The notes beneath the pieces are model-generated. The model saw only the letters and a program-made list of their open reading frames with translations. It made no database searches and was not told where the DNA came from. A stretch of DNA of 36,617 bases from Salisapilia sapeloensis CBS 127946 (lineage: Eukaryota > Protista > Oomycota), in the NCBI GenBank assembly GCA_023334545.1, contig JAADVB010000194.1, forward strand, positions 1-36,617, written 5' to 3'. Numbering within the stretch: position 1 is the first letter of the stretch; every line of letters starts with the position of its first letter. Position numbers and translations under genes: made by a program. Below are positions 1,083 to 25,928 of the stretch, one piece after another.

Positions 1083-4000
1083 ATGGAGTTGGAACGGCCG
1101 AATGACGTCCAAATACCACTAAATGACAACACGGAAGAATCGTCGCAGCCAGTCGCGTCTCGCCTTCGAAAGCGGACGACTGCTGGCGAATCCTCACACG
1201 AGCGAGCTGCTCGCATGCGAATCAAGATGGACGAGCAAAAGAAGCGGAATATCCGTGGCTCCATGTTCACACGTAAGCTTCCTGTATACCAGTTGCTACT
1301 ACTCCTCTTACCTTTTGATGTGTTATAGCGGCATTTAAACTCAACTTGGAACTGGCGATTCGAGTCGCCGTGGGTGTCCTCGTTGCGTCTGCAGTCCAAA
1401 CACGCACGAACGAAGACAACGCAGACGGTGAAGATGTCCAGCGATGGGTGCTATTTCCGAAATGGTACTACCTCGGTGGTCTTAGCTACTGCGCTGTAGC
1501 TGTGATCTTCACGACAGACAAGAACATCGGTGCTACGATTCACTGTATGTGCCAAGCCTTCTACGGTGTCGGTTTAGCCTTGATCTACAACATCATCCTG
1601 TTTTCCTTCGTCGACGTCCACTTGTTCGATCCAGAAGCAGGCCAACCGGAGAAACAAGGGTTCTTCCGGATCAACGTGACTTTCGATGGTAATCCATACT
1701 ACGTGAACGCTCACAACTTTTGGACGATCTTGCCATGGATCATGCTCTTCACCATCGCCGTCCTCATCCTACCGCTGGACACGAGCACCAAGAAGTTTTC
1801 TCTCGCAAACAACCTCTACTTTGCTCTGACGATTATCGATCCGACGAATCCGACGAATCCGACGAACAACTATCAATTGAAAACCGAAAAAGACAGCGAT
1901 TTCCAGACAGCGAATACGCTCCACAACCTCGAAATCTACTTTCTCGTCGGCTTCATCGGCACAGTCATATCGATACTCATCATGTTCATTCCGTATCCAA
2001 TCTTTGCTGTGAAACAGCTAAAGAAGGAAATGACTAAAGGTACGGAAGAGGTTCTAGAGATCCTCAACCTTATCGTCGACTCGTACTGCTTCAAGAACAA
2101 GAATGTCGATACGATGAAGTTCCTAAAACTCCAGCTTCAGCGCAAGTTTGACGACGAGAATGCTCGACACCTGCGGATGAAAGACCTCTTGACAGACGTC
2201 TGGTGGGAACAGCTCTTTGGTCTCCACTCATGTCTCAAGTTCAACCTGCCGATGTTGACGCAGTACACCAACCTCCTCGCGTCGCTCCTAAGTGACTTGG
2301 CGCAGCTCAATAGTGCTATGCGATTGGAAAAGTACGGACAGCTACATATTGCGTACATGAAAGTGCTCCAGCGAGACATCTACCAGATTCAGAACCAAGC
2401 TGGCGAAGCGCTGGAAGAGATTCAAGAGGTCGTGGTGACTGCAAAGCGAGAGATGAATATCAAGAAGCTGGAGGAACTCGAGCGACATATGGAACGGACG
2501 TTGCATCGGTATCGTATGACCCAGACGAGACAGTTGCGACAGAAGACTGTGGATAGGAAGGATGTGGAAGGCAACGTTCCGCTCAACCTTTTCCTCTTTT
2601 CTCTCCACTCTTTTTGCAGTTCTCTCAAGGGCTTCGAGACGACGCATAACAGCAAGGTCCATAGCGTCCGAGCTCGTGCGATCAAGTTTATTCGTAAAAC
2701 TGTCTTGGATTTCGTCTCGAGGAAGCACTATGACCAGTTGCGACTGATGAATACGATTAAGGTAGCTGTTGCCATCTTTGCTGGTACCATGCTCAGTATC
2801 TACGTCTACAACTTTAGCAGCACGGCACCTGCGACGGTGGCGTACGTCATGGGCAACCACATCGGAGGCTCTTTTAGCGTCACGGTGAATCGAGTCGGTG
2901 GTGTCGTGGCTGGAAGCGTCGTCCCATCCGTCTTCCAGTTCTTCATCTCGCAAGTATGTGACCATGATTTAAACAACATCCTCACATGCATTGCGCTATT
3001 CGTCTGGGTCGCCATCTCCATGTACGTTCGTTTCTCTGGTGGATACGGATGGTATGCTGGTCTAGTGTCTGCCTTCGTTGCTGCCGGTATCCTACTCAAA
3101 CAGACAGACGTGTGTCTCTCAGTAGATGGGGACTCGTCTCAATCAGTAGATGCGGACGCGTCTGTATCGACTGCCATCGCGAGCTACTCGACGATGGCCC
3201 AGACGTCTATCGGTATCATCCTCTTCATTCTCGTGGAACTGGCATTGATCCCACAGAGTGCGACGTCGCTTTTGCGGAAGAACATCCAAGAGACGATGGA
3301 TATGCTCGAAACGTCTTTTGTTGACTTGTTCAATCATCACGTCGGTGGGAAACATGACATGGACGAGATGAAACTCGCTGACCTGCGACATAAACTCCAG
3401 GTGCTTCTACCAGAGCAACTCGCAGAGCAAAAGCGTTTGCTACAGGAAGCAGACACAGAGCCAGAGTTATGGAAGCGACATTTCTCGTATCAAAAGTATG
3501 AAGAAATCCTCAAGAACTGCCATCGACTGTTGAACCACAACAATCTGCTCTACAAACTCATGCGCTGGTTTTCGTATCGTGTGGCAGATCATAAAGTGTC
3601 ATATCATGACATGGCAGACATTCGAGAGCACGCGCGTGTGTCGAGAGTGAGTCGCATGTCGAATGATGAAGATACGAGAGCGACGTGGGATGTTGCTGCG
3701 ACACAGTTTTTGGACTCGACGATCGATGACTTCAAGACGCTGCGAGAACTCTTTGGCGATAAGTTCCTGTACTCGGATCCGGACCAGACTGCAGTCTTTT
3801 TGCAGATGAAGGAAGCGTTCCGACTTGCGGATAAAGATGGAAGTGGTGAGATTGATAGCGATGAAGTCGCGACGATGCTCGAGAACATCTTCTTCGAGAC
3901 GGGTGCCGTGCGAGAAGAGGAGATTCAAGAGTACGTGAGCAACTTTATGGCGGCCGTGGATGCCGATGGAAGTGGCACTGTGTCGTTTGAAGAGTTTATG

Positions 4001-4591
4001 GACGCACTGCAGAACGGATTGAAGCTTGAAGTCGAAGTCTACCAGCGTCATAAGCGCAAGGCCAAGGCGATCGAATCGGCTGTTCAGGAACGGTCGTCGC
4101 GACCTCTGACGAACAGTCGCGCGACACCGTCCGAGCAGAGTCGCAGTCGTAGTCGATGGACTCGGAAGAGTGTCGATGCGAGTAGCACGCCGGTGAATGG
4201 CGCAAACAGCAACTATGTTGCGGCCAAGACACCGATTGGTAGCTTGGATAACTTTGCGGATGAACGAGTGAGCACGCCTTCGCACCAGGGGCAAGGAAAC
4301 CGAAGGTCGAGAGCGTCTACCGCAAGAGGTAGGGAGTCGAGCTCCACGAGTAACGGTCAGCAGTCACCATCTCCATTCACGAGACGGCATGACGTGTTGG
4401 ATATCGACGATTTCGAACTGACGGACTTGGCTGGCGCGATGAAGACGGCGTACATTGCGTGGCTGATGGATGGCAATCGATTCGAGAAGGTGACAATGGA
4501 AGAGCTGTTGCTCTTCAACTGTTTGATCAGTGGTGCTGAAGGTGTGGCTCATCAGCTTACAGCTTTGGAACAAGCAGTCGTGTCAGATTAG
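1083..4591 (+). CDS. FUSC/ALMT (aromatic acid exporter)-like multi-pass membrane protein with C-terminal EF-hand pair, paralog 1 (~1150 aa)
   Basis: Exons 1083-1272 and 1329-4591, with a 56-nt GTAAGC..TAG intron that joins the frames. Two hydrophobic blocks start ELAIRVAVG and IKVAVAI..AYVMGNHIGGSFSVTVNRVGGVVAG. EF-hand loops are DKDGSGEIDSDE and DADGSGTVSFEE. The FUSC/ALMT family call is from motif resemblance. Confidence 0.8.
1841..1867 (+). repeat. In-frame 9-nt tandem repeat (CCGACGAAY)x3 encoding PTNPTNPTN
   Basis: Direct reading: ccgacgaat ccgacgaat ccgacgaac, within paralog 1. Confidence 0.9.
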
Positions 4592-5209: not shown

Positions 5210-8200
5210 ATGGCATCTCCAGCTCGTATCAGTGGGTCTCGAATGCCGTCACTGGGTACGTTTGTCAAGAACTCGGAAAGCGATGTAGTGTCTAATATCT
5301 TTATGCCTGGCAGTACGTCTAGCAACGATTATGAGCCTTTGAATTCGGACCAAAAGGGTCGGTATGGATCGACGCAGTCGATGGGCTCAAGGAAGGGCTC
5401 GAAAGATAAAGAAATGAACGTCACGATGAAGATCGGCATGGACGACGATAAGAAGCAGGACTACACGAGCGGCCGTATCTTGCGTAAGATACCATTACTG
5501 TTCATAGTAGCCTACTTGATATGCATACTTATCATGCACTAGCTACTTTCTGGTCCAAGATGCAACTGTCCTGTCGTGTTGGCATCGCTGTCATCATTTC
5601 CTCCATCATTCAAATGCGGAACGATCCGTACGGAAATAATCACACGGAAGGCCATGACCAAGAATGGTACTTCTTCCCTAGCTGGTACTACATTGGTGGT
5701 CTTAGCTATTGCGCTGTCGCTATTATCTTTGCCGTCTGTGAGAATTTGGGTGGAACGATCTCTGAAATCTGCCATGCCTTCTTTGGTGTCGGATTCTCTC
5801 TCCTTTACAATGTCTTCCTCTTCCGTGTCCTCGATGTAGAATTATACAACCCAGAGGAAGACAACAAGGATGAAAAGTACTATGAGATCGACCGGACATT
5901 CTCTGGCGTTAGCTACTATGTCAACCAGAGTAACTTCTTCTACGTCCTCCCGTGGCTCATGCTCTTCGTCGTCATCATCGTCGTCCTACCACTCCACACT
6001 AGTACGAAAAAATTCGCTTTAGCCTACGATCTCTTCTTCACGCTGACGGTCATCAATCCAACGGATCCGTTGAATGGAGACCAGCTGAAAGAACAAGGAG
6101 ACTGGTACTTCCAGACCGACAACATTTTGCACAACCTTGAGCTCTATTTTGTCGTTGGTATGGTCGGATGGGCTGCCTCTATCCTTGTCATGATGATCCC
6201 ATATCCGCTCTTTGCTTTTTCCAGCCTTCGTTTCCAGATCGAAGAAGGAGCAGACGAAGTATTAGAAATCCTCAACCTCATCGTCGATACTTACTGCTTT
6301 AAGCACAAGACTGGTGACACGATGAAGTTCCTTGATGCCAAGTTGAAGCGCATGTTCGACAGTGCTACGGCTCGAGAGCAACGTATGAAGCAGTTGGTGG
6401 ATGACTTGTGGTGGGAACAGCTCTTTGGTCTTCAGTTCCTCTTGTCCTTCAATCGCTCCATGCTGCTCAGTTACATTCGTCTCTTGTCTACTCTGCTGTC
6501 CGATTTGCGTCAGCTGAACTTTGCCATGGAACTGGAAAGCTACGACGCTCTTCACGCTGAGTACATGCGTCACTTGCAGAGAGAAGTGCACTTGCTACAG
6601 CGACGAGCGGAGACTGTGTTGGACGAAGTGAGCACGAACATCCACGATAAGGCCAAGAAGTTAGATCTTAAGACGAAACCTGGGTTGGAGCAGCAGATGG
6701 AGAAAACGCTGCAGCGTTTCCATGAAGTCAACGATCGGATTCTACGATCCAAAGACTTGAACAAGGAGGACTTGGAGGACAATCTGGCCATGAACCTCTT
6801 CTTCTTCTCCTTCAACTCGTACTGCGCGTCTCTCATCAGCTTTGAAGAGAAGCACAACGCGGCCGATTACTCTACTGAAGGTCGATTCGAAACGTTCATG
6901 AAGCAAGCACTATACGAGTTTGTTGACATGCAATACTACGACCGCCTCCACATGGTGTCTGCGCTAAAGCTCACTGTCGCCATGTGTGGTGGTATCTTCC
7001 TCGCCGTCTACGTCTTCGACTTTGACAGTACGACGCCTGCCGCAGTAGCCTACGTCATGGGTAACCACATTGGTGGAGCTTTCAGTGTGACAGTAAATCG
7101 AGTGGGTGGTGTCGTGGCTGGATGTGTCATCCCATCCATCCTTCAGTTCTTCATCGCGCAGGTCTGTCACCCTCAGTACTTGAACGACTTGTTGATGAAC
7201 GGCACGCTCTTCTTCTGGGTCACCCTCTCCATGTACGTTCGCTTCTCGAGCGACTACTGGTGGTACGGAGGTCTCGTGTCCGCTTTTGTATCTGCTGGTA
7301 TCCTACTCAAACAGACGGACGTGTGTCTTCCAGGAGGCACTGACAGTGCAGTGAACATCTCCACGTCTTCCTACTCGTCCTTAGCCCAGAACTCTGTTGG
7401 GATCGTCCTCTTCATCTTGATGGAAGCCCTCGTCTTCCCAGAAAGCTCCATGAGTATCCTGCGCAAGAACATCCAGAAGACGCTGACTCTATTGGAAGAA
7501 AGCTTCGACACTTTGTTCCGTTACCATCTAACGCCAGAAGTCGGGATGGATCCTTCCAAGCTAGATGAGGTCCGAGAGAAACTTCGTGTTAAGATCCCAA
7601 AGCTCATCGCAGAGCAAAACGGTCTCATTACACAAGCTGCGGCCGAGCCAACGTTATGGAAAGCTGAGTTTTCAAAACAAAAGTATGACAGTGTCCATGA
7701 TCTATGTCAAGAACTTTTGAACAACAACAACTTGTTGTACAAACTCATGCGCTGGTATAAAAAGCGTTTGGAGCAGAACAAGGTGGATGAAGAGAAGACT
7801 GCGGATATTCGTAAGAATAAGTCGCAGCATACGTGGTTTAATGAGGATGAAGAAGAGGATACGGTTCGACGATGGACGGAGAACAGTGACAAGTTCCTCT
7901 TGTCCGTCCACGATGCGTTCGCGACACTCCACACGGTCTTTAGTGAAGAGTTCTTGTACACGGAGAACGATAAGACGGCTGTCTTCATGCAGATGAAGGA
8001 GGCGTTCCGAATGGCAGATACCAACTGCAGTGGCGAGATCTCGTCGAGTGAAGTGGCCAACATGCTGCAGCAAATCTTCCAGCAGACGGGAGCTGCGAGT
8101 AGCAAGGAAATCTCGAAGCATGTAAAGACGTTCATGATGCTGGTCGACAAGGACGGCAATGGCACCGTGTCCTTTGAAGAGTTCATGGACGCTCTCGAGA

Positions 8201-8646
8201 ATGGCCTGCAAGTGGAAACGCAAGTGTACAAGCGTAATAAACCCAAGGCGTCGAGACTGGCACAAGGAAAGAAGCAGCGTAAGGCTGCAGCCGGGAAGGG
8301 TCCGAAAAGTCAGAGCACGAAAGAAATGAAGGACGATGAGGATGCCACAGCGAAATCACCGTTGAAGAGTTCTAGCACTGGCACTAATCAAAGCTGGTCG
8401 GAACGAAATGACTCGATGCCGGATGTTCCGATGCAGCGTAGCCACGATGTGCTGAATGTGTCAGACTTTTCACTGACTGATGTTGCGGACGATATGCGAT
8501 CTGCATTTGTCGAATGGTTGATGGAAGATCAACGATTTGAGCAAGTGACGATGGAAGAGTTGGTGCTTCTAAACTGTCTCGTCAGTGGTGCGGAAGGTAT
8601 CGCTCGTCAAATGACTGAGTTGCAGGAAGCTGTGTTAGCCATCTAG
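5210..8646 (+). CDS. FUSC/ALMT-like EF-hand membrane protein, paralog 2 (~1100 aa; start at ATG 5210 or 5303)
   Basis: Exon 1 ends at 5483, followed by a 59-nt intron 5484-5542 (GTAAGA..TAG) and exon 5543-8646. It aligns by eye with paralog 1 throughout (YYIGGLSYCAVAII, WWEQLFG, YVMGNHIGG, QMKEAFR, LNCLVSGAEGIA). EF loops are DTNCSGEISSSE (degenerate) and DKDGNGTVSFEE. Confidence 0.8.
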
Positions 8647-8772
8647 GTAGGTGCTTGAGGTGGAATGCAAAACTTTTAGTTTCGATTACTTTTGTTTTTG
8701 CAGTTGGCAAGAGCTATAGATGTAGTTGCGATGTTTAGAACAGCTAAAGCGTTTCTAACATGGACATGAAAT

Positions 8773-9779
8773 ATGGACTCGAATCGTGAAAGCGATATGG
8801 CGAAAGTGGAGGAAGTGGAGTGGACATCAGCGCGATTAGCAGACGAATATAACGTAAAGCCACGGGTTGTGTACGATGCCTGTGCTATGTTTATTGCTAA
8901 TGCAATGCTTGTATCTAAATGCTGTTAATGACACTCGTAGCAATGTGGTCGGTCACGGGCGTCTGCGTTCTACAGTCGATTGCAAGCGATTAGCGTTACT
9001 AGTCCGCAATGCCGACTATACTCCTCGGGTAGATTACCTACTCGAACATTTGGAATACGTTTATACTCATATCATTATTGCATATGTAATTAGAGCTTTG
9101 GTGCTCTCATCCTCCGGTTTCGATCGCCCAAAGCGTCGATCTCTGTCTACAAAAGTGGCAAGGTACTCTACGTACAGCATAGAGCCTCAATAGCATCCTT
9201 AACATATCTTTGTAATGCAGTTCCTCGTCCTAGGTTGCCGACAAGAAAGTGAAGCTCATAGTGCTGTGGACAAATTCCGGTCCATCCTTCAAGTACATTA
9301 GCTCGGACATTTCGACACGCATCTCACCTCCACCCTTACCATTTACCCTCTAGAAAGTAGAATTTGAGAACGAACTAGACTTTTTCTCCATTGCCAACGT
9401 CGTCGTGTCCGTCGACCTCCACTTTAACGTCCGACTGGAAGGACTAGCACGAGACCACATCCGCTTTTGCACCGTACTATACCATCCATACGATCAACCT
9501 TTTCCTCTACTAATACCTTGTCATGAATAGTACGAGCCAGAGCTATTCCCAGGCCTTATCTATCGGATGATGAAACCCAAATGCACATTCCTCATCTTTG
9601 TCTCCGGCAAAATGATACTTACTGGACTACAAGTACTCTCCTTTCCTCTCTTCCTCTTCCATCTTGTTCACTCTCTTTAGAAAACGGAACAAGCAGATGA
9701 AGCTCTATGTGCTCTCTACCCTGCCTTACGCCAATACCGAATGGATCCTCCCATCGACTCTTCTTCCGACGATGAATAA
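8773..9779 (+). CDS. Divergent TATA-binding-protein-like factor (215 aa, 7 exons)
   Basis: Exons 8773-8870, 8941-9028, 9094-9162, 9221-9292, 9354-9473, 9531-9632 and 9681-9779 total 648 nt. All six introns are GT-AG and 48-70 nt. The spliced protein contains both TBP repeats: [30 protein letters not shown] and [47 protein letters not shown]. Confidence 0.9.
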
Positions 9780-9841
9780 CAAGTATGCAATCGTATCCTC
9801 TCAAGTTGTTTTTAAATGTACCTTATTCCCATGAGCTAAAG

Positions 9842-12175
9842 CTAGGCTAAATAGTTGTACATTTGCTGATCCTCCGCGTCTCGTTCAAGGTACTCTCGAT
9901 CAATCAGACTCTCAATCCGGCGCTTGACATCCGTCGCTTTTGCTGGGAAACGCACTTGGTTAAAGATTTCTGCCATCAAGAGCGGATGGGACAGTTTCTT
10001 TCGAGCCTTCATGATCCGAACGATCGCAGCGTCAACTTGATATTGTCGATCACGGAACACTCGTTCGTGCGTATCCTTGGCCTCTTGTGGTGTCTCCCGC
10101 ATCTGGATCGAATTGATCTTAATCCGGTGCAAAGCATTCGTGAACTTGGCGTTGAAGACAAACTCATCGTCATCATTCACATCCTTCCCGCGTGGTTCCT
10201 TCTGCAGCACACGCACTTTGCCACATGCGAGCGATTGGCACGTGCGTTTCAACTCCCCATCCTCGAGTCTCGTTTCTTCTTTCAGTTGTTTCAACGACAC
10301 TCGATCATTCGCGTTAAAGCAGAGCAAAACAATGGTTTGGAAGAGAGACACGAGGAGCTCCTTGCGTCCTGCTTTCGGGAAACGCGCTCGGACGACACAG
10401 TTGGCGAGCGAGTGTTGCCACTGCAACTGTCGTCCTTGATACTTGGACGCGTAGAACTGTTCAAAAATGTCTTTGAGAGGCGTAAGTTCTGTCGGCATGG
10501 TCATTTCTATCGAAGGATACGGAGGCCAGAAGCCTGTCGTAAGCACTTGGACGTGCATGTCTGGTCGTGGCTTCCCGAGTGCCTCCATCTTACTCTGACT
10601 AGCTGCATGTTGCTGAAACTGCGTCATCATGTTGTTTGACACATCAATGTCCTTGAACATACCCTCGAGTTTCATCGTAAAGGAGCTCCCGCACTCAGTC
10701 TTGAGCTTGGCTAGCATGAGTTTCTCCAGATCGAACGACGCACTCTTTCCAACCAAGAGTCGTTTTGCTAAGTCTTTCTTATAAAACGCTTCAAACACGT
10801 CTTTACCTTGGAGGTACCGGAAAATGACCATGACACGATCCAACAACGCTTCCACTTCACTCTCGGATCCGCCTTTATTCCCCTGTCGAAGCTTCCCGTC
10901 GACGAATTTCGCCACAAGCTCAGCAGGACGACTCGCACGTGCATTCACACCATGCTCCATGGCGGATTTAAGTGCAAACGTAAACTCGGCACTCGAGTGG
11001 AACGACTCTTTCAAAACCTTGTCGAGACACTGCTTGAACGCGAGCAAGTTCTCCACTAGGTGCTTCTCCTGCTCGACGTCCTGGACCATGGCAGACACCT
11101 TGGCTTTGATATAGGTCGAGAAGGCTTGCTTCAGGTCATCTCGAGCATCCACTCGGCCGAAAAGAGCGTACATGCGTTGCAAGTCGTCTACCTGTACTTG
11201 ATCCAAGAGGTCCTGAAGACCTCGTTCCAATAGAGTATGCACGTGAGGCTGTAGTAAATGACTTTCAACGGTATGCACAAGACGTTTGTGTGTCGAGTTG
11301 TCTAGATAATGGACCACGCGATCCCCTTCTTCCTGCAGTCGAGACTCGACATGACGTAAGAAGTGTTTCACACTACTTTCCGACACGAGAGAGGCGCCTT
11401 CGGAAGCGTAAAACTGTTCCGATGAAGTTAAAAATGGCGTCTCGAAGCGATTATAGAGCTGCAACGACGTCAGCATACGAAGAACATTGTATAGCGAGCT
11501 GCGATTGACTGTTTCGCCACGTCGCTCACGATCTATTAGCTCTAGGAGAGCACTGAGGAGACGAGATTCGAGGGCTGGACGAGCGACCACTTGGTCTCGT
11601 AGCGAATGCAAGCCCATGTCCCAGATAGATGCCACGTGAGGCGTTTGGACGACGTACGTTCGGTCTAGGTAGAGGAAAATCGTACGGACTGTTAGCATAT
11701 TGTCGCAATGGTCTTGCCAGAGATTGTCAACTGCCGAGAGAAAGACATCTGCGTCAGACCCGGCCGATTCGAGCGTGTCGACACGAGTCTTGATGGTGCT
11801 GGCGCAGACTCCTGTCAGCCGCTCGTACAATCTACATTAGAGTTAGCTACGTTCTTGATGCAATATAACACCTGTCTACCTTGCAGCCATTTTCCATGTA
11901 CACAAGTCTTCTACTGCTCGATAAAGCTCTTCACGAGATAAGGAAGTTGGTTGTTTCGCATTCACGTCGTGTAAGGCAGCTTCGAGCTTTTTCCACGTCT
12001 CGTCTTCAAACGAATCAGGCAGTGTCGGTGCTTTCTTAAAAGGCTTGATAGTCATTTTCTTCTTCGCACCAAGCTTTACGCCGCTACTGAAAGCGTGGCT
12101 TGTGCCTGTCGGACGAGATCCACCTTCACTCTTTGGTCGGATGGACACTCCGCGTGCATTCGTTGGTGGCGCCAT
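9842..12175 (-). CDS. CUL4: Cullin-4 (761 aa)
   Basis: Exons 12175-11880 and 11831-9842, with a 48-nt intron 11832-11879. Motifs include SREELYRAVEDLC, FLYLDRTYV, GKDVFEAFYKKDLAKRLLVGKSAS, KLEGMFKD and the neddylation domain DRQYQVDAAIVRIMKARK..ESLIDREY. The N-terminal KKMTIKPFK..P.LP segment is CUL4-type. Confidence 0.93.
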
Positions 12176-17132: not shown

Positions 17133-20100
17133 ATGGTTAAGTACGTGTTCCTACAAGATACAGTAGCCACTTGGGCGGATGGTATACTGATTGGACGCAA
17201 TCTGTAGGCAATCCAGTGAAAACCAAGAGCTGTCCGAGCCGCTCAATCCGGATCGAGACGTGCAAATGGAAGAAGATACGAATGGCCAGAGCAATGGCCA
17301 TGCCAATGGCCAGAGCAATCGTAACGGCGTTCGTCAGCGCAAGAACAAGCAAGATGAAACGTCGCCAGGATACACGACCAAGATGAAGGTCGGTATGGAT
17401 CGAAATGATACGCAAAAGAAAGAGCAGCAACGCAATCGCATCAAACGTACTTGTCTTTATACGTTTTCTAGGTATGAAGTATTGACATAATGATCCATAG
17501 CCACTTTCTTCAAGACACTGGAGCTAGCAGCTCGTGTTGGTGCTGCTTGTATTATCGCATCGGCAATTCAAACACGTGAAAATTCTACTCAGGAAGTCAA
17601 TGTGGTCAATGAAGAGCAAATGTGGGCCTTGTTTCCATACTGGTACTACCTCGGAGGTCTGAGCTTTTGTGCCGTCGCAGTGATTTTCGCTGCCGGTGAA
17701 AATCTTGGCGCGACGATGATGGAAGTATGCCACGCCTTCTTCGGTGTTGGTCTCGCGCTCGTCTATAACATCATCCTGTTTTCCATCGTCGACGTCGAAC
17801 TGCACGATCCCGATAATGAAGACTTCACTGGGTACTACCAGATCAACACGACTTTCACAGGTTCCAGTTACAAAATCCATCTGGGCAACTTTTATACTGT
17901 CCTGCCTTGGATCATGGTTTTCGTCGTCGTCGTCGTCGTCTTGCCAATCAACTCGAGCACGAAAAAGTTCGCGCTCGCATACGACTTGTACTTCGCTCTA
18001 ACAATCATAAATCCGTCGAATCCGTTGTATGATCCGTCGGATGATTCGTCGGCTTCGCGGGAGGAAGACCAGCTGAAAGTAGAAGATGTATCGTTCTTTC
18101 AAACGCCCAACACGCTGAGAAACCTTGCAATGTACTTTGTCGTCGGCCTACTCGGATGGGTACTATCCCTCGTCATTATGATGATTCCGTACCCTCGCTT
18201 TGCGATCTGGACGTTCAAGAAGCATATGGCAGAAGGTGCAGAAGAAATTATGGAGATTCTAAACCTCATTGTCGATGCCTATTGCTTCAAGAAGAAGAGT
18301 GCCGGGTCGATGAAGTTCTTAAAAGCCAAGTTGGAACGCAAGTTTGAGGCTGCGACTGCCCGTCATGAGCGCATGACGACGCTACTGGGCAACGTCTGGT
18401 GGGAGCAGATTTTCTTGTTGAACTACATTCTAAACTTCAATCGGTCAATGCTCCAAAGCCACCTCCATCTCCTCACGACACTTCTGGCTGACCTACGAGC
18501 TCTCAACTTTGCGTTGGAACAAGAAAGCTACGATGAACTCCACTTCCGGTACATGCAAAAGCTACGACGAGATGTGCACGTCATGCAGCTTCGTTCGGGT
18601 GACGTTTTGGACGAGATCACAGCCAACGTTCGTGCTTGTACGACGAAAATGGACATGCAGTCTGTACCGAAGCTTGATGAGCACATGAAGGACACGCTAA
18701 GACACTTTTACGACGTGAACAAGTCTATCTTGGGCGGCGGAGACGTGACGGCCAAGGATCTAGCGGACAACCAGCCGCTCTATCTCTTCTTTTTCTCCCT
18801 CCACTCGTTCTCTGCGTCGCTCACGAGCTTCCAGGACAAGCACAACAAGACGAACTACACTGTTGGCGAACGTCTTCAGAACTTTTTACGGAACTTCTTC
18901 ATGGACTTTGTCAATCCGGACTACTACGACCGTATCCACATGGTGTCGTCTTTAAAGGTAGCGATTGCTATCTGCATTGGTGTCTTTCTCGCTGTCTACG
19001 TCTTCAACTTTAGTAGCACTGCACCTGGAGCTGTGGCTTACGTCATGGGAAACCACATTGGTGGAGCCTTTAGTACGACTGTGAACCGAGTGGGTGGTGT
19101 CGTGGCTGGATGTGTCATCCCATCCATCCTCCAGTTCTTCATTGTTCAAGTGTGTGACCCTTACTACTTGAAAGTCGTCTTGATGAACGCACTGCTCTTC
19201 GTGTGGGTCACGCTCTCCATGTACGTTCGTTTCTCCAGTAGCTATTGGTGGTACGGAGGTCTCGTATCTGCCTTTGTGTCTGCTGGTATCCTACTTAAGC
19301 AAACACACGTGTGTTTAAACGATGAAAACAGTTCATCTAGTGTCGCCACGTCGTCCTACTCTTCCTTAGCCCAGAACTCGGTCGGTGTCGTCCTCTTCAT
19401 CCTCATGGAGCTCTTGGTCTTCCCGGAAAGTTCTCTCAGTCTCCTTCGGAAGAATATCAAGAAGACATTGGACAAGTTGGAATCATCATTCAATACGCTG
19501 TTCAACTTCCACATGAACACGGATGTAGAGCTAGACCAGAAGAAATTGGATGAAGTCAAGGAAATTCTTCAGAACCAACTACCAGGTCTCTTGTCGAAAC
19601 AGAAAGGATTGATGCAAGAAGCAAGTCATGAACCAGCATTGTGGAAAGCTCCGTTTTCGAAAGAGCGATATGGAAACGTCCACTCAGCGCTACAGCGTCT
19701 ATTGGATCACAATAACTTGATGTACAAGCTCATGAGATGGTACGCCAAGCGTGTGAATGACGCTAATACCGATACGGATGGCGGAGAGGACATTCGGGAG
19801 GAAAAAGGACCTCAGGACGATGCGCGAGATGAGTGGAAGGACTCGACGCACCAGTTCTTGAATGTGGTGGAAGACACGTTCGACTCGTTGGATACGGTCT
19901 TTAGTAACAAGTACCTGACGTCCGGATCGGATCAGACGGCCATGTTCTTGCAAATGAAAGAGGCGTTCCGAGAGGCAGATGTGGATGGAAGCGGAGAGAT
20001 TGATCGAGATGAAGTGGAGCACATGCTCAAGACGGTCTTCTCCCAAGCGGATGCTGCGAGCAACCAAGAGATTGAACAGCACGTGGATGAATTCATGCAG

Positions 20101-20493
20101 CTCGTGGACCAGAACAATGATGGCAAAGTGTCGTTTGATGAGTTTATGACAGCGTTGGAGAATGGACTGGAAGTGCATACGGAGTTGTATGAGAAGAATG
20201 CATCCAGTTCAAAGAACCCGTCGGATGGAGAGAAGCGAGACGGTGCAAATGAAGATCGACAGGGAGGTGGAGAACCCATGCGACACGAGCATGACGTCTT
20301 GAACGTATCGGAATTCTCCATCAACCAATCGGCCAAGTACATGCGTTCAGCTTTTGTCCATTGGCTTGTGAAAGACCATCGGTATGAAAAGGTGACGCTG
20401 GAAGAGCTCTTGCTATTCAATTGCCTCGTCGGTGGCTCCAAGGGTATTGCGGAGGAACTGACCAACTTGCAAGAAACGATCGTCTCGGACTAG
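17133..20493 (+). CDS. FUSC/ALMT-like EF-hand membrane protein, paralog 3 (~1050-1075 aa; start at ATG 17133 via a micro-exon, or ATG 17266)
   Basis: A 54-nt intron 17447-17500 (GTACTT..TAG) joins ..RNRIK-P to TFFKTLELAARVG, in frame with ORF 17602-20493. A candidate upstream intron 17141-17207 (GTACGT..CTGAT..TAG) gives MVKQSSEN. EF loops are DVDGSGEIDRDE and DQNNDGKVSFDE. Confidence 0.8.
17281..17319 (+). repeat. In-frame imperfect 12-nt repeat encoding NGQS-NGHA-NGQS-N
   Basis: Direct reading: aatggccagagc aatggccatgcc aatggccagagc aat. Confidence 0.8.
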
Positions 20494-20881
20494 AGAAATC
20501 TTTATAAATGCATAAGAGATGGTTTTGATCTTTAAACTCTGTTTCTCATGTGTTTAGTAGTGCCTTTGGAGCAAAGAGATCTTGTAGGTTGCTACGAAAG
20601 TAAAAGCTTGTTTAATGTAATATTAAGAGCAATTCGTCTCCTACGAAGTTGCTGTAGCTACAAGGATAGAAAGTACCATTCTACTTTAAAACCTATAGCA
20701 GTTTCATCCGATTCGTTCTCGTAATTAGGTCTGTGCGAAGAACACACACTTCTCGACTCGTAGAAAGGGTATTTGTTGCAATGGTCCGTCAATCTAAAGC
20801 GAACACCTGTTCCTATCTTGGCAATGTGATGAATGGAACAAAAGTATTTATTATGTACTTAGTGATATCGCTCTCTCTTCA

Positions 20882-23467
20882 TCAACTCCCGCCTTCATCT
20901 ACAACAATTTCATCCATTTGCATCACATTGAGTTTCCCAGCGAGGTCAGCAATACGTTTCGGAAGTCCTTTGCAAACGACCAGTACAGGATGGTTTGCTA
21001 GCAATTCGATCTTATCGTCCGAGTCGACAACTTCCTTGGCTCGACTTAACTCTTCAATCCGAATAGGTCGACTAGCTACAGCCACAAGCATCCTGGCTGC
21101 AAACTTTGGTGAGAATGGAGACAGCTGGAACACCTTTTCTCCATGACCGGTGACCGATCCATCCGTCGTGACGGATTGCCTGGCTGTTAGCAGTACCTTT
21201 AGCTCAGAAGAGTTTGTCAGCAAGTCAGACAAAAACATTCGAAAGCTATCTTTCCTTTCGTCCGACCTGAGAAAGTAATCACAGCCATCCAACAGAATGA
21301 GTCGCTTCTGATAAGGAGCCTTTTGGCTGCGTGTCATCAGATATTCTTGCACCCGTTCCTTGAGCCGTGGAAGCACCAGAGTCCTTCCAGCACTCGACGG
21401 TCGACCAACGCTTGATGTTAAAGCAATACTTTGAGCTTCCAATTCTTCACGTACAATCCGGTCGACTGCAAAGACTTTGGCATTGCCTTGAGTAGTAAAC
21501 CTCGGACCGACATAGTTAATCACCGCATGAGCGACAGCCGTCTTACCAATGCCTTCGGCGCCTGTGATAGAAGCCAGACGCATACTCTTCGACCGATTCG
21601 CGAGAATAGCTTCGCTGATCTTGTACACTTCGACCGTTCTGTTCGAAAACCCTTGGCACAGTCCAGGCAGATCGTCAAACCAGAGCTTGGGCGCTTTGGT
21701 CTTCTTGAACGATCCGAGACCTTGCGATGCCATGGCGCGCATGGTAATAGGAGGAAAGATGACTTCGGAGTGATCTCCGTCCTCTGGTAAGAGCATAAAC
21801 TTGTTGGACACTCGTATCGGGTCTTTAATGTTCGGAGAGCTCGCTACTGCTTCCTGAGCTATGTGGTAGCTACTCCCGACGGCCTTACCCGCAGCTAGTG
21901 CCAAGTAGAAGGATCGAGTGAACTCAATCGCAGCATGGTCTTCTATCTTTTCACCTTCTCTCACACCAACGACATGTGGGATGCCACAAGTAACAAAGGC
22001 TTTAGCAATGGAAGCAGAGGAACAAGCAGATACGAAAACTAGACGCAACGGTGGCTCTCCACCTACTAAGCTACCTGCTGAGAAGAGTTTCTGAAGACCG
22101 GAGTGAGGGATTGGATGCACGAGTGCTGCGCCGTCTTCAAAGTACAAATGGTGTTCATCTCCGTGACCTGAAAAGTGAAGAGCTCGACAGCCGAGCGTCA
22201 CGACCGATCGGAAGTTCTCGCTACTGGCGAACTTTGCACTGACACGAATGTGTCGCGGAACTTCAAAGAGTGCCTGTCCATCTCCTTGTTGGTTGAACGC
22301 TTCGGACCTCATCTTCCCGTACCGAGCAGCTTCTAGGAGACTCTCTTGGAGGATCGTGTACTCTCGCTTGATACCGATCTCTGGTATCGGATGGTACCGA
22401 CCATGGATATCTTTACCAACGAGTGGGACGGCGAATAAGACACCCAAAGTATATTCGAGAAACTCACGAGTAACTTGAGACGATTCGCTGTTCTCACTCG
22501 CGTGTCGGACTTCTGTCGTGATTTTATCTGCTGGCGTCACGAGGTTGCTCATCTCTGCGATGGCAGCTCCTTTGATATGAGGGTCTTCTACAATGTAGCC
22601 TAAAAGCACTCGACCGCTTGGATTGGATAGCAAAGTAATCGTGTCTCCGTGCTCCACTTGCTGTCGAGTGCGTTTGGGGACTTGCTGTCCATTAACTCGG
22701 ATACCATTCGTGCTGCAGTCGGTGACGTATAAAGCATACTTCCCGTTGGATCGAGACGGAGGTCTTTGTGGTGACATCTCCTGGTTCTCGGATAGTGGAG
22801 TAAGGTGCGCGGATTCCTCTAACAGGTAGTCGAAGACGGCATGCGTGCGACTAAGACGCACAGGATCGATCGGACTTGTATGCTTACTAAATATACGAGC
22901 AAAGACGTCTCGACCGAGTTGTACGTTTGAGTGGTGTCGATTCATATCCAAAACGTCGAGTCGGGCAGCTCGAAGAGCAGCATGCTGCTCAGCAGTCAGC
23001 GATCTTTCCACATCTGGGTGAAGCTTTACGAGCATCGTGTTGTGCATCGCTTCACTATCCTCCAGCGTTTGCGAGAACTCTTGCGTGGCTTGCTGTGAGA
23101 TCGACAGCTCGTCCAGAATGCTCTGGGAATTATGTATCTCTAGCTCGGTCACCTCGTCTTTCGTTAGACGCTCACCTATCATGCTACTACCATCGCCATC
23201 ATTGGCTCTGGACGATGGAGCCGAGTGTCGGAGTCGCTTGGAAGACTGACGAGCTATCGATTCTTCTCTTTGCCGAGCCTGCTTCGACGATGGCGACCTC
23301 ATGTACGACGAGGACGGTTCTCTCGTGGATAAATGTGCTGGAAATCCAATCACATCTTCCGTATCTGGGCTCTTAGCAGAGTAGAACGACTCGCTAGACT
23401 CTTCTGGTATCTGTATAGTACTCCCAGCACCGTTCATCTGCCTACTATCTCCGTTCCTCATCTCCAT
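20882..23467 (-). CDS. FHA + CHAT (caspase-like protease) + STAND/NB-ARC-type NTPase protein (~861 aa)
   Basis: Single long ORF; the first ATG is at 23467 (the track's 23527 is a GTG preceded by an in-frame TAA). FHA motifs: QLGRD..RLSRTHA..VTDCSTNGIRVNG..HGDTITL. CHAT motifs: LHFSGHG (His 22163-22165) and LVFVSAC (Cys 22022-22024). Walker A is GAEGIGKT, Walker B is LILLDGCD, then VLLTAR and CKGLP. Confidence 0.85.
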   Translation of the reverse strand: MEMRNGDSRQMNGAGSTIQIPEESSESFYSAKSPDTEDVIGFPAHLSTREPSSSYMRSPSSKQARQREESIARQSSKRLRHSAPSSRANDGDGSSMIGERLTKDEVTELEIHNSQSILDELSISQQATQEFSQTLEDSEAMHNTMLVKLHPDVERSLTAEQHAALRAARLDVLDMNRHHSNVQLGRDVFARIFSKHTSPIDPVRLSRTHAVFDYLLEESAHLTPLSENQEMSPQRPPSRSNGKYALYVTDCSTNGIRVNGQQVPKRTRQQVEHGDTITLLSNPSGRVLLGYIVEDPHIKGAAIAEMSNLVTPADKITTEVRHASENSESSQVTREFLEYTLGVLFAVPLVGKDIHGRYHPIPEIGIKREYTILQESLLEAARYGKMRSEAFNQQGDGQALFEVPRHIRVSAKFASSENFRSVVTLGCRALHFSGHGDEHHLYFEDGAALVHPIPHSGLQKLFSAGSLVGGEPPLRLVFVSACSSASIAKAFVTCGIPHVVGVREGEKIEDHAAIEFTRSFYLALAAGKAVGSSYHIAQEAVASSPNIKDPIRVSNKFMLLPEDGDHSEVIFPPITMRAMASQGLGSFKKTKAPKLWFDDLPGLCQGFSNRTVEVYKISEAILANRSKSMRLASITGAEGIGKTAVAHAVINYVGPRFTTQGNAKVFAVDRIVREELEAQSIALTSSVGRPSSAGRTLVLPRLKERVQEYLMTRSQKAPYQKRLILLDGCDYFLRSDERKDSFRMFLSDLLTNSSELKVLLTARQSVTTDGSVTGHGEKVFQLSPFSPKFAARMLVAVASRPIRIEELSRAKEVVDSDDKIELLANHPVLVVCKGLPKRIADLAGKLNVMQMDEIVVDEGGS

Positions 23468-23804
23468 CGGTCGTAGCGATGTCTGTGTAAAGCGTCGTGT
23501 ACCTCTCCTGTACCGCTTCGAATCCACTTAACCGTTACTTCACTAAAACTTCCATCGAAGTCGGCCGGGGGGCGAAAAATTATTTCAATCAGGCCAGAGC
23601 TAAGTAGACAAGTACCGTCTTTCATATTATTCACTCGAACTGGTACTAAACTTCCTTCCTACGTTTCTCATCTTTCGTAGAGAGATTCTCTCGTGCTTTA
23701 TCTCCTTGCCACTCGACATTCGATCTTTTGATCAAACGTTCATTTCCTTCCACTTATATCGTCCACCCCTTCTTATCAAAAGTAACAAGACACGAGACGT
23801 CTGG
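23468..23804. promoter_or_regulatory. Short divergent (probably bidirectional promoter) interval between the FHA-CHAT-STAND and LRR genes
   Basis: The first ATGs lie on opposite strands about 340 bp apart. No specific promoter element was identified. Confidence 0.45.
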
Positions 23805-25928
23805 ATGGTCACCGTGTCCGCGAGAGAAGTACAGCAGATTCTACACGAATGGTGTGGTCCGCTAGAGAGTCACGTACGGCTCGAGGACGCCGAGTTCCGA
23901 CGCCACTTTCGACCGACGCAGTGGCTCGTACTGCGCCTCGTCCACAGGCCTCCGCTACAATCTGAGGACTCGACATCCAACCCGGCTCCACGCAAATCAA
24001 GGCGTGTGGGAAATAAAGCCTTCCCGAGTCAAGCCAACATCAATCGGTCCCCGTACCTCAAGCAGTGGGTCACGGCCATCCAGCGCCAGCTCGACGCAAT
24101 CCAAGTGCTCTTGTTCCTCATGCGACTCGTACCGTGCATGGACGCCCAAGCGCAGCAGCATATCGTCGACTTTCTAGGTGCCATGACTATATCCCAGAGT
24201 AAGCAGGCTATGATACAGGAATCCAAGAAGCATGCTCGGAATCAACGACCCAAAGATGATACATGGGCGCCAGCGTTTCATGATCCGACCCAGCAGCATG
24301 CCGTCTGGGCTATGACTAGTGACGAAGACAGAGGACTGGGCAGTGTCCACGGTCTCGTGCTAGACTTTGCCGGGTGGGAAGTGCTGCCAGAAGCCATCTT
24401 CCAGGCAGTTGGACAAGTGCTGCGATGCTCGACGAGTAGGATTGACGAAGCTAATGCCGAGCCTCTGCGAAGGGCTGTGCAGATCGCTCGATCCGCTGAT
24501 TCTGGCGTGTCCGAAATACTGGATCGCGTGATTCCCGTCGACTTGCGCTTCTGGAATTGCAAGCTGAATGCATCGAGTCTTGATCTAATCCATCGACACT
24601 TGGTCCACTGCCGTACGCCCGAGATGTCATCTCCCGCCACGTCTTCTTCATCGTTAACGTCGTCTCCAGCCTCGAAAGCAGCGTATTCTAGATTATTCGT
24701 AGTTCAGATATTGGATTTAAGCTCGAACGTGCTAAATCGAGATGCCATCCGGCAGATCACGTCGTCCACCTTGAGTGCAGGAAATAATGTCGCTGGGTGT
24801 CTGTCTTGTGTCAAGTTGAATGGCGTCTGCTGTGACGACGTCGACCCGGACGCGACTTTGAGTCTAATGACAGCCATCTTCTCTCCTGTACTCGATGGTG
24901 ACGGGTCTGCCCATCGCATGCAAGAGATTGCATTCGGAGACAACGCTCTCACGTGGCAGCAATTGGCTTGTCTCGGCTCTCTACTGCACACAGTTCCGTG
25001 TCCGACAGAAGCCAAGCGTCGACTTGGTCTCTCTCGTCTGCAGCCTCCTCTCTCCATCGATAAGGAGACGATGTGGCAGTGGCTAATGTTCGCTGTCTTC
25101 CACCCTCTCTCTCGTGCTGGTATCAAAGAGCTCGACCTCTCCGGTAACGGACTCGAGGTATCGGACGTCTACGCTGCCCAACGAGCGCTTCGGCTTGCCC
25201 AACCACCGCGTGATGTCTGGTACGACGAACCATTCTTGTCCGAGTACAAGCTCCCACAGGATGAACGCGACCGTCGAGATCAAGACGTGTCGACTTTAAG
25301 TGAATCCGAAGGAGATGACTTTGCAGAGTACGTTCGTGTCTCGTCCAAAGCGACGTTCCGGTCTCGACCGACTCGAGCCTCACGGAAGCTCAACTGCGTC
25401 GTCGCAGATAATCGCGAGAGTTGGTTCCCTGTCGTCGATCGACAGCACGACTGCGTCTGCGTCATGCTGCCTGGCGTCGGCTATGCGTGGGTCCATCCTC
25501 CGTCTGCTGTGATTGAGACGCAGACGAGGGAGATGCCACCGGACGGTGTGCATAGTGTCCGGGCGTTGAAACTAGACTTTATGGTCTCATCTGGCATGGG
25601 CCACACGTATGAACCTTCTCTGATGGAGCTCGTGAATGGCATGCTCCAGCTCATCGGTCATCCATTAACGTCCTTGTCGTTGCGTGGGAACTATATGAAA
25701 AGCGAGGATGTAGTGCAAGTGATGGACCTTTGTCCGAACTTAGAGAGCTTGGACTTGCAAGGATGCAGCCTCGTGGACATCGGCGGACTGGTGCTGACGC
25801 TACGACGTCGAGAGCGTTGTGCGCATCTGCGTCATTTGAATCTGCGCTACAACTTGTTTTCGTCCATTGACTTGAACTTGTTGACCGAGTTGGAGAACTC
25901 GGTGCAAGAGATGGAAGTTTGGTACTAG
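23805..25928 (+). CDS. Leucine-rich-repeat (RNI-like) protein (~707 aa; 3' end may be spliced further)
   Basis: Long ORF with first ATG at 23805. LxxLxLxxN units include QILDLSSNVL, IKELDLSGNGL, LTSLSLRGNYM, LESLDLQGCSL and LRHLNLRYNLF. WQWLMFAVF and CVMLPGVGYAWV resemble an uncharacterised oomycete LRR family (recalled, unverified). Confidence 0.8.
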   Translation: MVTVSAREVQQILHEWCGPLESHVRLEDAEFRRHFRPTQWLVLRLVHRPPLQSEDSTSNPAPRKSRRVGNKAFPSQANINRSPYLKQWVTAIQRQLDAIQVLLFLMRLVPCMDAQAQQHIVDFLGAMTISQSKQAMIQESKKHARNQRPKDDTWAPAFHDPTQQHAVWAMTSDEDRGLGSVHGLVLDFAGWEVLPEAIFQAVGQVLRCSTSRIDEANAEPLRRAVQIARSADSGVSEILDRVIPVDLRFWNCKLNASSLDLIHRHLVHCRTPEMSSPATSSSSLTSSPASKAAYSRLFVVQILDLSSNVLNRDAIRQITSSTLSAGNNVAGCLSCVKLNGVCCDDVDPDATLSLMTAIFSPVLDGDGSAHRMQEIAFGDNALTWQQLACLGSLLHTVPCPTEAKRRLGLSRLQPPLSIDKETMWQWLMFAVFHPLSRAGIKELDLSGNGLEVSDVYAAQRALRLAQPPRDVWYDEPFLSEYKLPQDERDRRDQDVSTLSESEGDDFAEYVRVSSKATFRSRPTRASRKLNCVVADNRESWFPVVDRQHDCVCVMLPGVGYAWVHPPSAVIETQTREMPPDGVHSVRALKLDFMVSSGMGHTYEPSLMELVNGMLQLIGHPLTSLSLRGNYMKSEDVVQVMDLCPNLESLDLQGCSLVDIGGLVLTLRRRERCAHLRHLNLRYNLFSSIDLNLLTELENSVQEMEVWY

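Follow-up and report, generated by a model that had tools for sequence, protein, structure and literature searches.

The stretch of DNA considered here, hereafter the window, comprises 36,617 nucleotides of the oomycete Salisapilia sapeloensis CBS 127946 (contig JAADVB010000194.1, from an assembly of 22.4 Mb in 1365 contigs), and its minus strand carries an intact gene in which an FHA domain, a caspase-like CHAT domain, and a NACHT-like P-loop NTPase are encoded by one open reading frame (ORF). The ORF runs uninterrupted over 20882..23527(-), which would give 881 amino acids (aa) from a GTG codon; the first ATG, at 23467, gives a protein of 861 aa, and the TGA stop occupies 20882-20884. The gene is the local ortholog of a pan-oomycete, essentially single-copy protein in which an SQ/TQ cluster, an FHA domain, a CHAT domain, and a NACHT-like NTPase (nucleotide-binding domain and helical lid) follow one another, an assignment of architecture and orthology that we make with high confidence. 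The features of the gene, and the spacer beyond its stop codon, are as follows.

20882..23467, minus strand: complete intron-free coding sequence (ORF 23467 to 20885, aligned end to end with 22 oomycete orthologs)
23162..23467, minus strand: disordered, poorly conserved N-terminal tail, aa 1-102 (predicted local distance difference test, pLDDT, below 35; variable alignment)
23057..23128, minus strand: SQ/TQ cluster followed by T134-L-E-D, candidate phospho-acceptor segment and candidate FHA ligand
22583..23035, minus strand: extended FHA domain, aa 145-295 (Pfam, invariant columns, pLDDT 85-93, Foldseek, and PDB profile matches)
22739..22804, minus strand: loop insertion in the FHA domain, ~21 aa, aa 222-243 (HLTPLSENQEMSPQRPPSRSNGK region; a gap in all 22 orthologs, low pLDDT)
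21743..22450, minus strand: CHAT caspase-like protease domain, aa 340-575 (Pfam, invariant dyad, fold match)
22163-22165, minus strand: predicted catalytic His435, in the motif FSGHG (aa 432-436)
22022-22024, minus strand: predicted catalytic Cys482, in the motif VSAC (aa 479-482)
20885..21646, minus strand: NACHT-like P-loop NTPase, aa 608-861, nucleotide-binding domain and helical lid only
21539-21562, minus strand: Walker A (glycines and lysine at aa 636-642; G636, G639, G641, and K642 invariant)
21278-21301, minus strand: Walker B, LILLDGCD, of the NACHT-style hhhhDGxD form (D727 and D730 invariant)
aa 760-763, minus strand: sensor-1-like LTAR (T761 invariant, R763 at least 90% conserved)
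20960-20968, minus strand: GLP lid motif, aa 834-836 (Pro836 invariant)
20494..20881, no strand: 3' intergenic spacer of 388 bp, up to the stop codon of a convergent EF-hand/FUSC-like transporter gene

Conservation is given throughout for an alignment of 23 sequences, made up of the Salisapilia protein and 22 oomycete orthologs. The FHA domain is recognized by Pfam (PF00498, aa 184-279, 34.5 bits against a cut-off of 20.7), and its profile is matched by 21 of the 23 sequences. The phospho-Thr pocket (R186, S206, H209, and N254/G255) is invariant, with the residues predicted to bind phospho-Thr all retained, and a profile search against the PDB places the FHA domains of Mek1, Chk2, and Rad53 closest among solved structures. 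The ~21-aa loop insertion is in frame and, among the aligned sequences, unique to the Salisapilia copy; its interpretation as an unspliced in-frame intron was ruled out for want of usable GT..AG borders.

Upstream of the FHA domain, the first 102 residues align variably apart from basic KR-rich patches (RKRR, KRxR-like), and are followed by four S/TQ sites within 19 aa (S114Q, S124Q, T128Q, and S132Q) and then by a near-invariant T134-L-E-D, in which T134 is conserved in at least 90% of the sequences. This cluster, which stops 13 aa short of the FHA domain, contains half of the S/TQ sites of the entire protein and constitutes an SQ/TQ cluster domain (SCD; at least three S/TQ sites within 100 aa, here beside an FHA domain). 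Within the 60 aa upstream of the FHA domain, 3-5 S/TQ sites occur in 22 of the 23 aligned sequences and two occur in the remaining one (~0.3 expected), an enrichment with a shuffle P of at most 0.0075 in 22 of the 23. T-x-x-D fits a CK2-type site and also the preference of some FHA domains for Asp at pT+3. The presence of the cluster beside the FHA domain strengthens the idea that a phosphopeptide reader would serve as the input of this protein. A second, small conserved SQ motif was noticed in the FHA-CHAT linker, in the region of 22470-22480 of the window (aa ~328-332), before the first CHAT strand; it reads SQDKSQQG in Phytophthora and Pythium and is a single SQ at aa 330 in the Salisapilia protein.

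The CHAT domain likewise exceeds its Pfam cut-off (PF12770, aa 413-548, 32.8 bits against 24) and is matched at E<=1e-3 by all 23 aligned sequences; H435 and C482 are invariant in these sequences and at least 90% conserved across a broader set of 76 CHAT-NTPase cassettes. The end of the domain is marked by a cassette-specific motif, KFxLLPEdGDHsEvIFP. By fold, the domain matches the SAVED-CHAT chain 8tl0_A (VIA Z 22.8, root-mean-square deviation (rmsd) 2.5 Å over 200 residues, 21% identity; Foldseek E 2e-9). The full-length model is of moderate confidence (pLDDT 65.9) and resolves the extended FHA, CHAT, and NTPase domains, the first 102 residues and the linkers being disordered. A second model, computed for the CHAT-NTPase cassette alone (aa 335-861) from an alignment of the 76 sequences, reached a pLDDT of 92.2 and a predicted template modeling score (pTM) of 0.91, and the CHAT and NTPase domains are therefore predicted to form one compact unit.

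In the Salisapilia protein, the Pfam profiles AAA_16 (aa 611-755, 27.7 bits against a cut-off of 32.6), NACHT (aa 633-793, 25.8 against 26.7), and NB-ARC (aa 626-847, 12.3 against 23.5) all fall below threshold, AAA_16 and NACHT (together aa 611-793) by a small margin; across the family, NACHT is matched at E<=1e-3 in 23 of the 23 aligned sequences (best 8.5e-8), and more distant relatives exceed the cut-offs for NACHT, nSTAND1, AAA_16, or NB-ARC. The modeled NTPase (residues 260-527 of the cassette model) superposes on CED-4 113-360 (Z 13.2, rmsd 3.2 Å over 210 residues), and also on ZAR1 152-391 (Z 12.3) and NRC4 150-383. As far as sequence can tell, its profile matches, a Walker B of the DGxD type, and the T-A-R and GxP lid motifs group the NTPase with the NACHT-like STAND proteins. 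The cassette model contains the lid helices, with only five short helices following the last strand, and the aligned ranges of the STAND proteins (CED-4 ~360, ZAR1 391, NRC4 383) end at about the end of HD1; the module is therefore best described as a nucleotide-binding domain and lid without a winged helix. In sum, the protein has every residue required for binding phospho-Thr, for catalysis as a cysteine protease, and for binding and hydrolyzing nucleotide.

The C terminus lies at the helical lid and follows GLP by 25 aa, and Pfam detected no TPR, WD40, or LRR repeats in the protein. All 22 aligned orthologs share this C-terminal end, each stopping 20-35 aa past a G[IL]PK..A.LA motif, so that the shortness of the C terminus characterizes the family as a whole; truncation or missed 3' exons were ruled out by this common end, by the 388 bp that separate the stop codon from the convergent gene, and by the fact that the cassette ends many proteins. 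The preliminary description of this DNA had proposed a single ORF with an FHA domain, a CHAT domain with intact His (FSGHG) and Cys (VSAC), and a STAND P-loop module, ending about 25 aa after GLP without TPR, WD40, or LRR repeats. The single ORF and its three domains are borne out by Pfam, the 23-sequence alignment, and the fold searches, the His and Cys proved to be invariant, the CHAT fold that it had suggested checking by structure prediction is present, and the repeat-free end extends to the whole family. Further 3' exons bearing a repeat sensor, which it had envisaged, find no room in the spacer and are at odds with the like ends of the orthologs. As for its STAND module, the P-loop NTPase stands and the full module does not, a winged helix being missing after the lid.

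A word-based search returned 71 relatives, every named one of which is an oomycete, with 52% as the best identity of any database relative to the Salisapilia protein. Species of Phytophthora, Nothophytophthora, Peronospora, Hyaloperonospora, Peronosclerospora, Pythium, and Globisporangium each yielded approximately one full-length FHA-CHAT-NACHT protein (48-52% identity); one was also obtained from Albugo (46%) and one each from Saprolegnia, Achlya, Thraustotheca, and Aphanomyces (33-35%); the obligate biotrophs Albugo, Peronospora, and Hyaloperonospora thus retain the family. The orthologs are annotated just as hypothetical or "FHA domain-containing" proteins. In a quick maximum-likelihood tree of the cassette, with support from the Shimodaira-Hasegawa-like approximate likelihood ratio test (SH-aLRT), the Salisapilia protein falls within the peronosporalean clade, after Albugo and outside Pythium, Globisporangium, and Phytophthora, and the tree as a whole mirrors oomycete phylogeny, as for a vertically inherited ortholog. 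Extra divergent FHA-bearing paralogs occur in Saprolegniales; neither the family search nor the cassette tree revealed any lineage-specific expansion in peronosporaleans. The distribution of approximately one protein per species, together with a gene tree that is congruent with that of the species, speaks for a core function. The preliminary description had allowed that the architecture might turn out to be an already characterized housekeeping family; a full-text literature search turned up no publication that deals with FHA-CHAT-STAND or SH2-CHAT proteins in oomycetes.

Beyond the oomycete orthologs, a profile search of 1.84 billion representatives yielded 582 proteins at E<=1e-30, nearly all of which align to profile positions ~320-840, i.e., CHAT plus NTPase, with a constant distance of ~185-200 aa between GHG and Walker A. 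Among 147 near-complete cassettes, 93 (a count that takes in 43 oomycete orthologs and the Salisapilia protein itself) end within 40 aa of the end of the protein, and 46 belong to proteins that continue for more than 150 aa. The CHAT-NTPase cassette accordingly appears, from its sequence distribution, to be a natural, self-contained unit. Its bearers include a 779-aa FHA-CHAT-STAND protein of the malawimonad Gefionella okellyi, which is 30% identical to the Salisapilia protein and has the same end; a 2466-aa protein of the labyrinthulid Mucochytrium quahogii, in which SPRY, Arm, and LRR domains are N-terminal and the cassette is C-terminal; and members in the haptophyte Haptolina and the deep stramenopile Platysulcus. 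Two contigs of bacterial type that were inspected by hand (those bearing P0219 and P0102), and from which the prokaryotic distribution is read, encode CHAT-NACHT-TPR proteins that are 33-35% identical over the cassette. The preliminary description had called for a survey of the architecture across stramenopiles; FHA-CHAT-STAND is present throughout the sampled oomycetes and is not confined to stramenopiles, as Gefionella has it too.

The Salisapilia genome itself contains, besides the single ortholog, two cassette paralogs and a fourth, weak match (contig 369, C369). The first paralog (contig 80, C80; L002:814-3609, plus strand; 931 aa) consists of a CHAT domain (aa 65-296), a STAND P-loop (aa 365-503), a region of ~240 aa, and an SH2 domain (aa 830-907). 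The SH2 domain, a phospho-Tyr reader, occupies the place where a repeat sensor normally sits. This SH2-CHAT-STAND family is common to other oomycetes, where it is annotated as "SH2 domain-containing protein" (e.g., P0047-P0070), and in the quick tree the clade of its cassettes groups with the bacterial TPR forms. The second paralog (contig 712, C712; L006:3993-8870, plus strand; 1626 aa) carries a SAM domain, a CHAT-like region that is 41% identical to aa 406-548 of the FHA-bearing protein, NACHT/nSTAND1, TPR_12 repeats, and a C-terminal KH domain, that is, a conventional repeat region and an RNA-binding domain on the cassette. Across these proteins, one putative executioner cassette seems to have been joined, at one end or the other, to various ligand-binding domains, of which FHA and SH2 would read phospho-sites. 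Of the earlier proposal that the FHA domain acts as the input, the part concerning a phosphopeptide reader gains support from the SH2 paralog and from the SQ/TQ cluster; the innate-immune framing in which it was placed does not.

On balance, we lean to a modest degree towards a phospho-gated, assembly-activated protease as the best analogy-based account of this protein. The CHAT-NTPase cassette would be a self-contained executioner module, in which nucleotide-dependent self-association of the NTPase would bring CHAT domains together and activate them by proximity, as suggested by analogy with the CED-4/CED-3 apoptosome and with SAVED-CHAT filaments. The input would be phosphorylation rather than a repeat sensor: a kinase would phosphorylate a Thr in the SQ/TQ-TLED segment or on a partner protein, candidates being a PIKK-type (ATM/ATR-like) kinase for the TQ sites and an acidophilic CK2-like kinase for T134-L-E-D. 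The FHA domain of another protomer would then bind the phospho-Thr, leading to head-to-tail assembly or recruitment in the manner of the SCD-FHA module of Chk2 and Rad53; the simplest FHA ligand would be the protein's own phosphorylated SQ/TQ-TLED segment, bound in trans. Four FATC-domain matches lie in the Salisapilia genome (contigs C450, C438, C414, and C694), in open frames of 1760-3261 aa, and these FATC-bearing, PIKK-size genes are candidates for PIKK-family kinases. A specific link to PIKK or DNA-damage signaling is put forward only tentatively and is rather unlikely. As for the output, regulated proteolysis in a conserved program, e.g., stress- or DNA damage-linked cell death or a developmental step, is the most likely, and variable non-self recognition is less likely, because the family is distributed one per species and congruently with the species tree, obligate biotrophs included. 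The conserved FHA and CHAT residues and the SQ/TQ cluster are consistent with the phosphorylation-triggered protease switch first suggested for this gene, whose proteolytic activity is predicted from these residues.

Several observations weigh against this account. Among Saprolegniales, a second family of FHA paralogs is without the SQ/TQ cluster, and the Gefionella protein has just two S/TQ sites upstream of its FHA domain, which restricts the cluster to the core oomycete orthogroup. Moreover, acidic, low-complexity linkers can give rise to SQ/TQ clusters. By structure, the FHA domains of SNIP1, Pml1, and DDL, not that of Chk2, rank first in Foldseek. No winged-helix domain follows the lid, and with it the element that normally locks and organizes STAND oligomers is gone, such that the protein may assemble differently or only with the help of a partner. 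The NTPase also fits NSF-D2, p97, Mpa, and ORC/Cdc6 as well as it fits STAND proteins; separation of STAND from classical AAA+ by structure alone was attempted, and the Z-scores (12-13.6) were tied. Finally, one of the bacterial relatives, the CHAT-NACHT-TPR gene at 8001-11135 of a 145-kb Joint Genome Institute (JGI) metagenome contig (L010; P0219), has as neighbors Mrr, GmrSD_N, DUF4145, an HD protein, a DNA methylase, and a second CHAT/Peptidase_C14 gene, a defense-island-like setting that makes an immune role of the family possible.

An innate-immune NLR-like receptor, in which the FHA domain would sense a pathogen- or virus-derived cue and the protease would bring about cell death, is accordingly the alternative raised by the preliminary description, and it draws on the combination of an effector with a NACHT-like NTPase, on the bacterial relatives just mentioned, and on fungi, where CHAT proteases, which are related to caspases, activate gasdermin in a cell-death pathway (PMC10197012). 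We nevertheless consider it improbable, given that approximately one ortholog is found per oomycete species and is kept in the genome-reduced obligate biotrophs, that the tree follows the species tree without lineage-specific expansion in peronosporaleans, that the functional residues and both protein ends are conserved, and that an FHA domain reads a host-made modification rather than a foreign molecule. PADLOC, in addition, returned no match for the protein or its cassette, and for the bacterial relatives it gave no named system, only weak SAVED_CHAT or TPR matches. With neither a PADLOC match nor, for the Salisapilia protein, a meaningful NCBIfam match, a known anti-phage system was ruled out. 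The immune framing thus fares poorly on copy number, tree, and defense-family matches, and the protein bears a closer resemblance to a conserved protease switch triggered by phosphorylation than to an immune receptor that evolves fast.

A second alternative is a phospho-dependent scaffold or AAA+-like remodeling ATPase, in which CHAT would be non-working or would cut only itself, and which would act as a housekeeping regulator rather than a death switch. In structure, the NTPase matches NSF, p97, RFC, and ORC no less closely than it matches STAND proteins, housekeeping genes typically show a conserved, single-copy distribution, and FHA proteins are often adaptors; the His/Cys dyad and its motifs, however, are invariant in oomycetes and at least 90% conserved in the 76 cassettes, which argues for retained catalysis, and both the sequence profiles, which favor NACHT, nSTAND, and AAA_16 over classical AAA, and the NACHT-type DGxD Walker B point away from a classical remodeler. 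We therefore regard this explanation, too, as unlikely.

The neighboring genes bear on a third alternative.

17602-20493, plus strand: convergent gene for a FUSC-like membrane protein with an EF-hand pair in its tail
23706-25928, plus strand: divergent, head-to-head gene for a 740-aa protein with LRRs only at its C terminus (Pfam LRR_4, LRR_8, and LRR_1 at aa 654-730)

Some 240 bp separate the ATG of the FHA-CHAT-NACHT gene from the LRR ORF, a divergent promoter region that the two genes share. Seven genomic contexts were compared, the window included. In Globisporangium splendens, an LRR homolog is again head-to-head with the FHA-CHAT ortholog (E 4e-45), whereas in Phytophthora fragariae the homolog (E 7e-22) is on the 3' side of the ortholog, in tandem orientation; no LRR homolog was detected when ~8 kb were searched by tblastn in each of Peronospora effusa, Pythium oligandrum, Saprolegnia parasitica, and Aphanomyces stellatus. 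The unrelated EF-hand transporter adjoins the ortholog in exactly the three lineages that have the LRR neighbor, and inherited microsynteny with local inversions, read from these gene orders, explains the adjacency with no requirement for functional pairing. A split or paired receptor, with the LRR gene acting in trans as the source of the repeat sensor that the protein lacks, is thus very unlikely in spite of the shared promoter region and the conserved adjacency, the more so as the cassette, without a sensor, ends many unrelated proteins. The FUSC-like/EF-hand gene is present in three copies in the window (17602-20493 on the plus strand and paralogs at 1346-4591 and 5521-8646), and its homologs flank the ortholog in P. 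fragariae and G. splendens, as in an old microsynteny block.

Almost nothing is known of regulated cell death, or of what sets it off, in oomycetes, which include major crop and fish pathogens, and a single gene of this kind, conserved throughout the group, offers a concrete, genetically tractable entry point to the subject. The cassette dispenses with the winged helix and the repeat sensor, both of which are usually held to be central to STAND regulation, and swaps input modules (FHA, SH2, SPRY, TPR, and KH) at either end while having close bacterial relatives, features that bear on the working and evolution of NLR-like machines. Likewise, the SQ/TQ-FHA head suggests a testable link from kinase signaling to protease activation, parallel to the activation of Chk2. 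A more far-reaching proposal, which we regard as doubtful, is that oomycetes, and perhaps other protists, wired a checkpoint-kinase-style SQ/TQ-FHA switch onto a protease-ATPase cassette of bacterial defense ancestry; if true, it would provide a direct route from ATM/ATR-type or other stress-kinase signaling to proteolytic cell death, and a minimal STAND executioner that operates without a winged helix or repeat sensor.

Bacteria and fungi are known to have STAND/NLR-like NTPases joined to caspase-fold effectors, and the protein described herein can be compared with several known systems. Among these are the NLR-related bacterial CHAT-NACHT-TPR proteins (e.g., P0219/P0084, P0102, P0088, and P0090), which share with it a homologous cassette (33-35% identity over ~450 aa) with the same His/Cys dyad, linker motif, Walker A and B, and GxP lid motif; they differ in carrying ~400-750 extra residues with TPR after the cassette and in having neither an FHA domain nor an SQ/TQ cluster. 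The oomycete SH2-CHAT-STAND proteins have a paralogous cassette (28-31% identity over 38-53% of the query) and the same oomycete range, but their SH2 domain is C-terminal, ~240 aa after the lid, and they have no FHA domain. With Apaf-1/CED-4 and caspase-9/CED-3, the likeness is that a STAND-type NTPase couples oligomerization to the activation of a caspase-fold protease; here, in contrast, the protease is fused in cis, N-terminal to the NTPase, and belongs to the CHAT family rather than to the caspases proper, and CARD, winged helix, HD2, and WD40 sensor are all lacking. The C-terminal LRR, TPR, or WD40 repeats by which NLRs are recognized are absent, and the expansion and diversification that are typical of NLRs, if not defining, are not seen in the family.

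The best structural match to the protease domain is SAVED-CHAT, the type III CRISPR-associated protease (PDB 8tl0), in a structure titled as an activated filament. SAVED-CHAT is switched on by ligand-driven filament assembly; it is bacterial, its input is a SAVED domain that binds cyclic oligonucleotides, and it has no NTPase and no FHA domain. The N-terminal half of the comparison is with Chk2, Rad53, and Cds1, whose regulatory head is an SQ/TQ cluster beside an FHA domain, and the Salisapilia protein resembles them in having such a cluster directly before an FHA domain whose phospho-Thr pocket is intact. In these kinases, a PIKK (ATM in the case of Chk2) phosphorylates the cluster, and the FHA domain of a second molecule binds it, resulting in oligomerization and activation. 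The output of the Salisapilia protein, by contrast, is a caspase-like protease and NTPase instead of a kinase, and Pfam finds no kinase domain after its FHA domain; by analogy, it may work like an SCD-FHA module, but it is not a member of the checkpoint-kinase family. In a search of the same genome for a canonical Chk2 (FHA plus kinase), the five of 18 FHA matches that were inspected are FHA-RING (two), FHA-PP2C, and FHA-only proteins. Set beside these known systems, what is new here is the combination of an FHA domain and SQ/TQ cluster as the putative input, a cassette with no winged helix or repeat sensor, strict core-gene conservation, and a parallel SH2 paralog.

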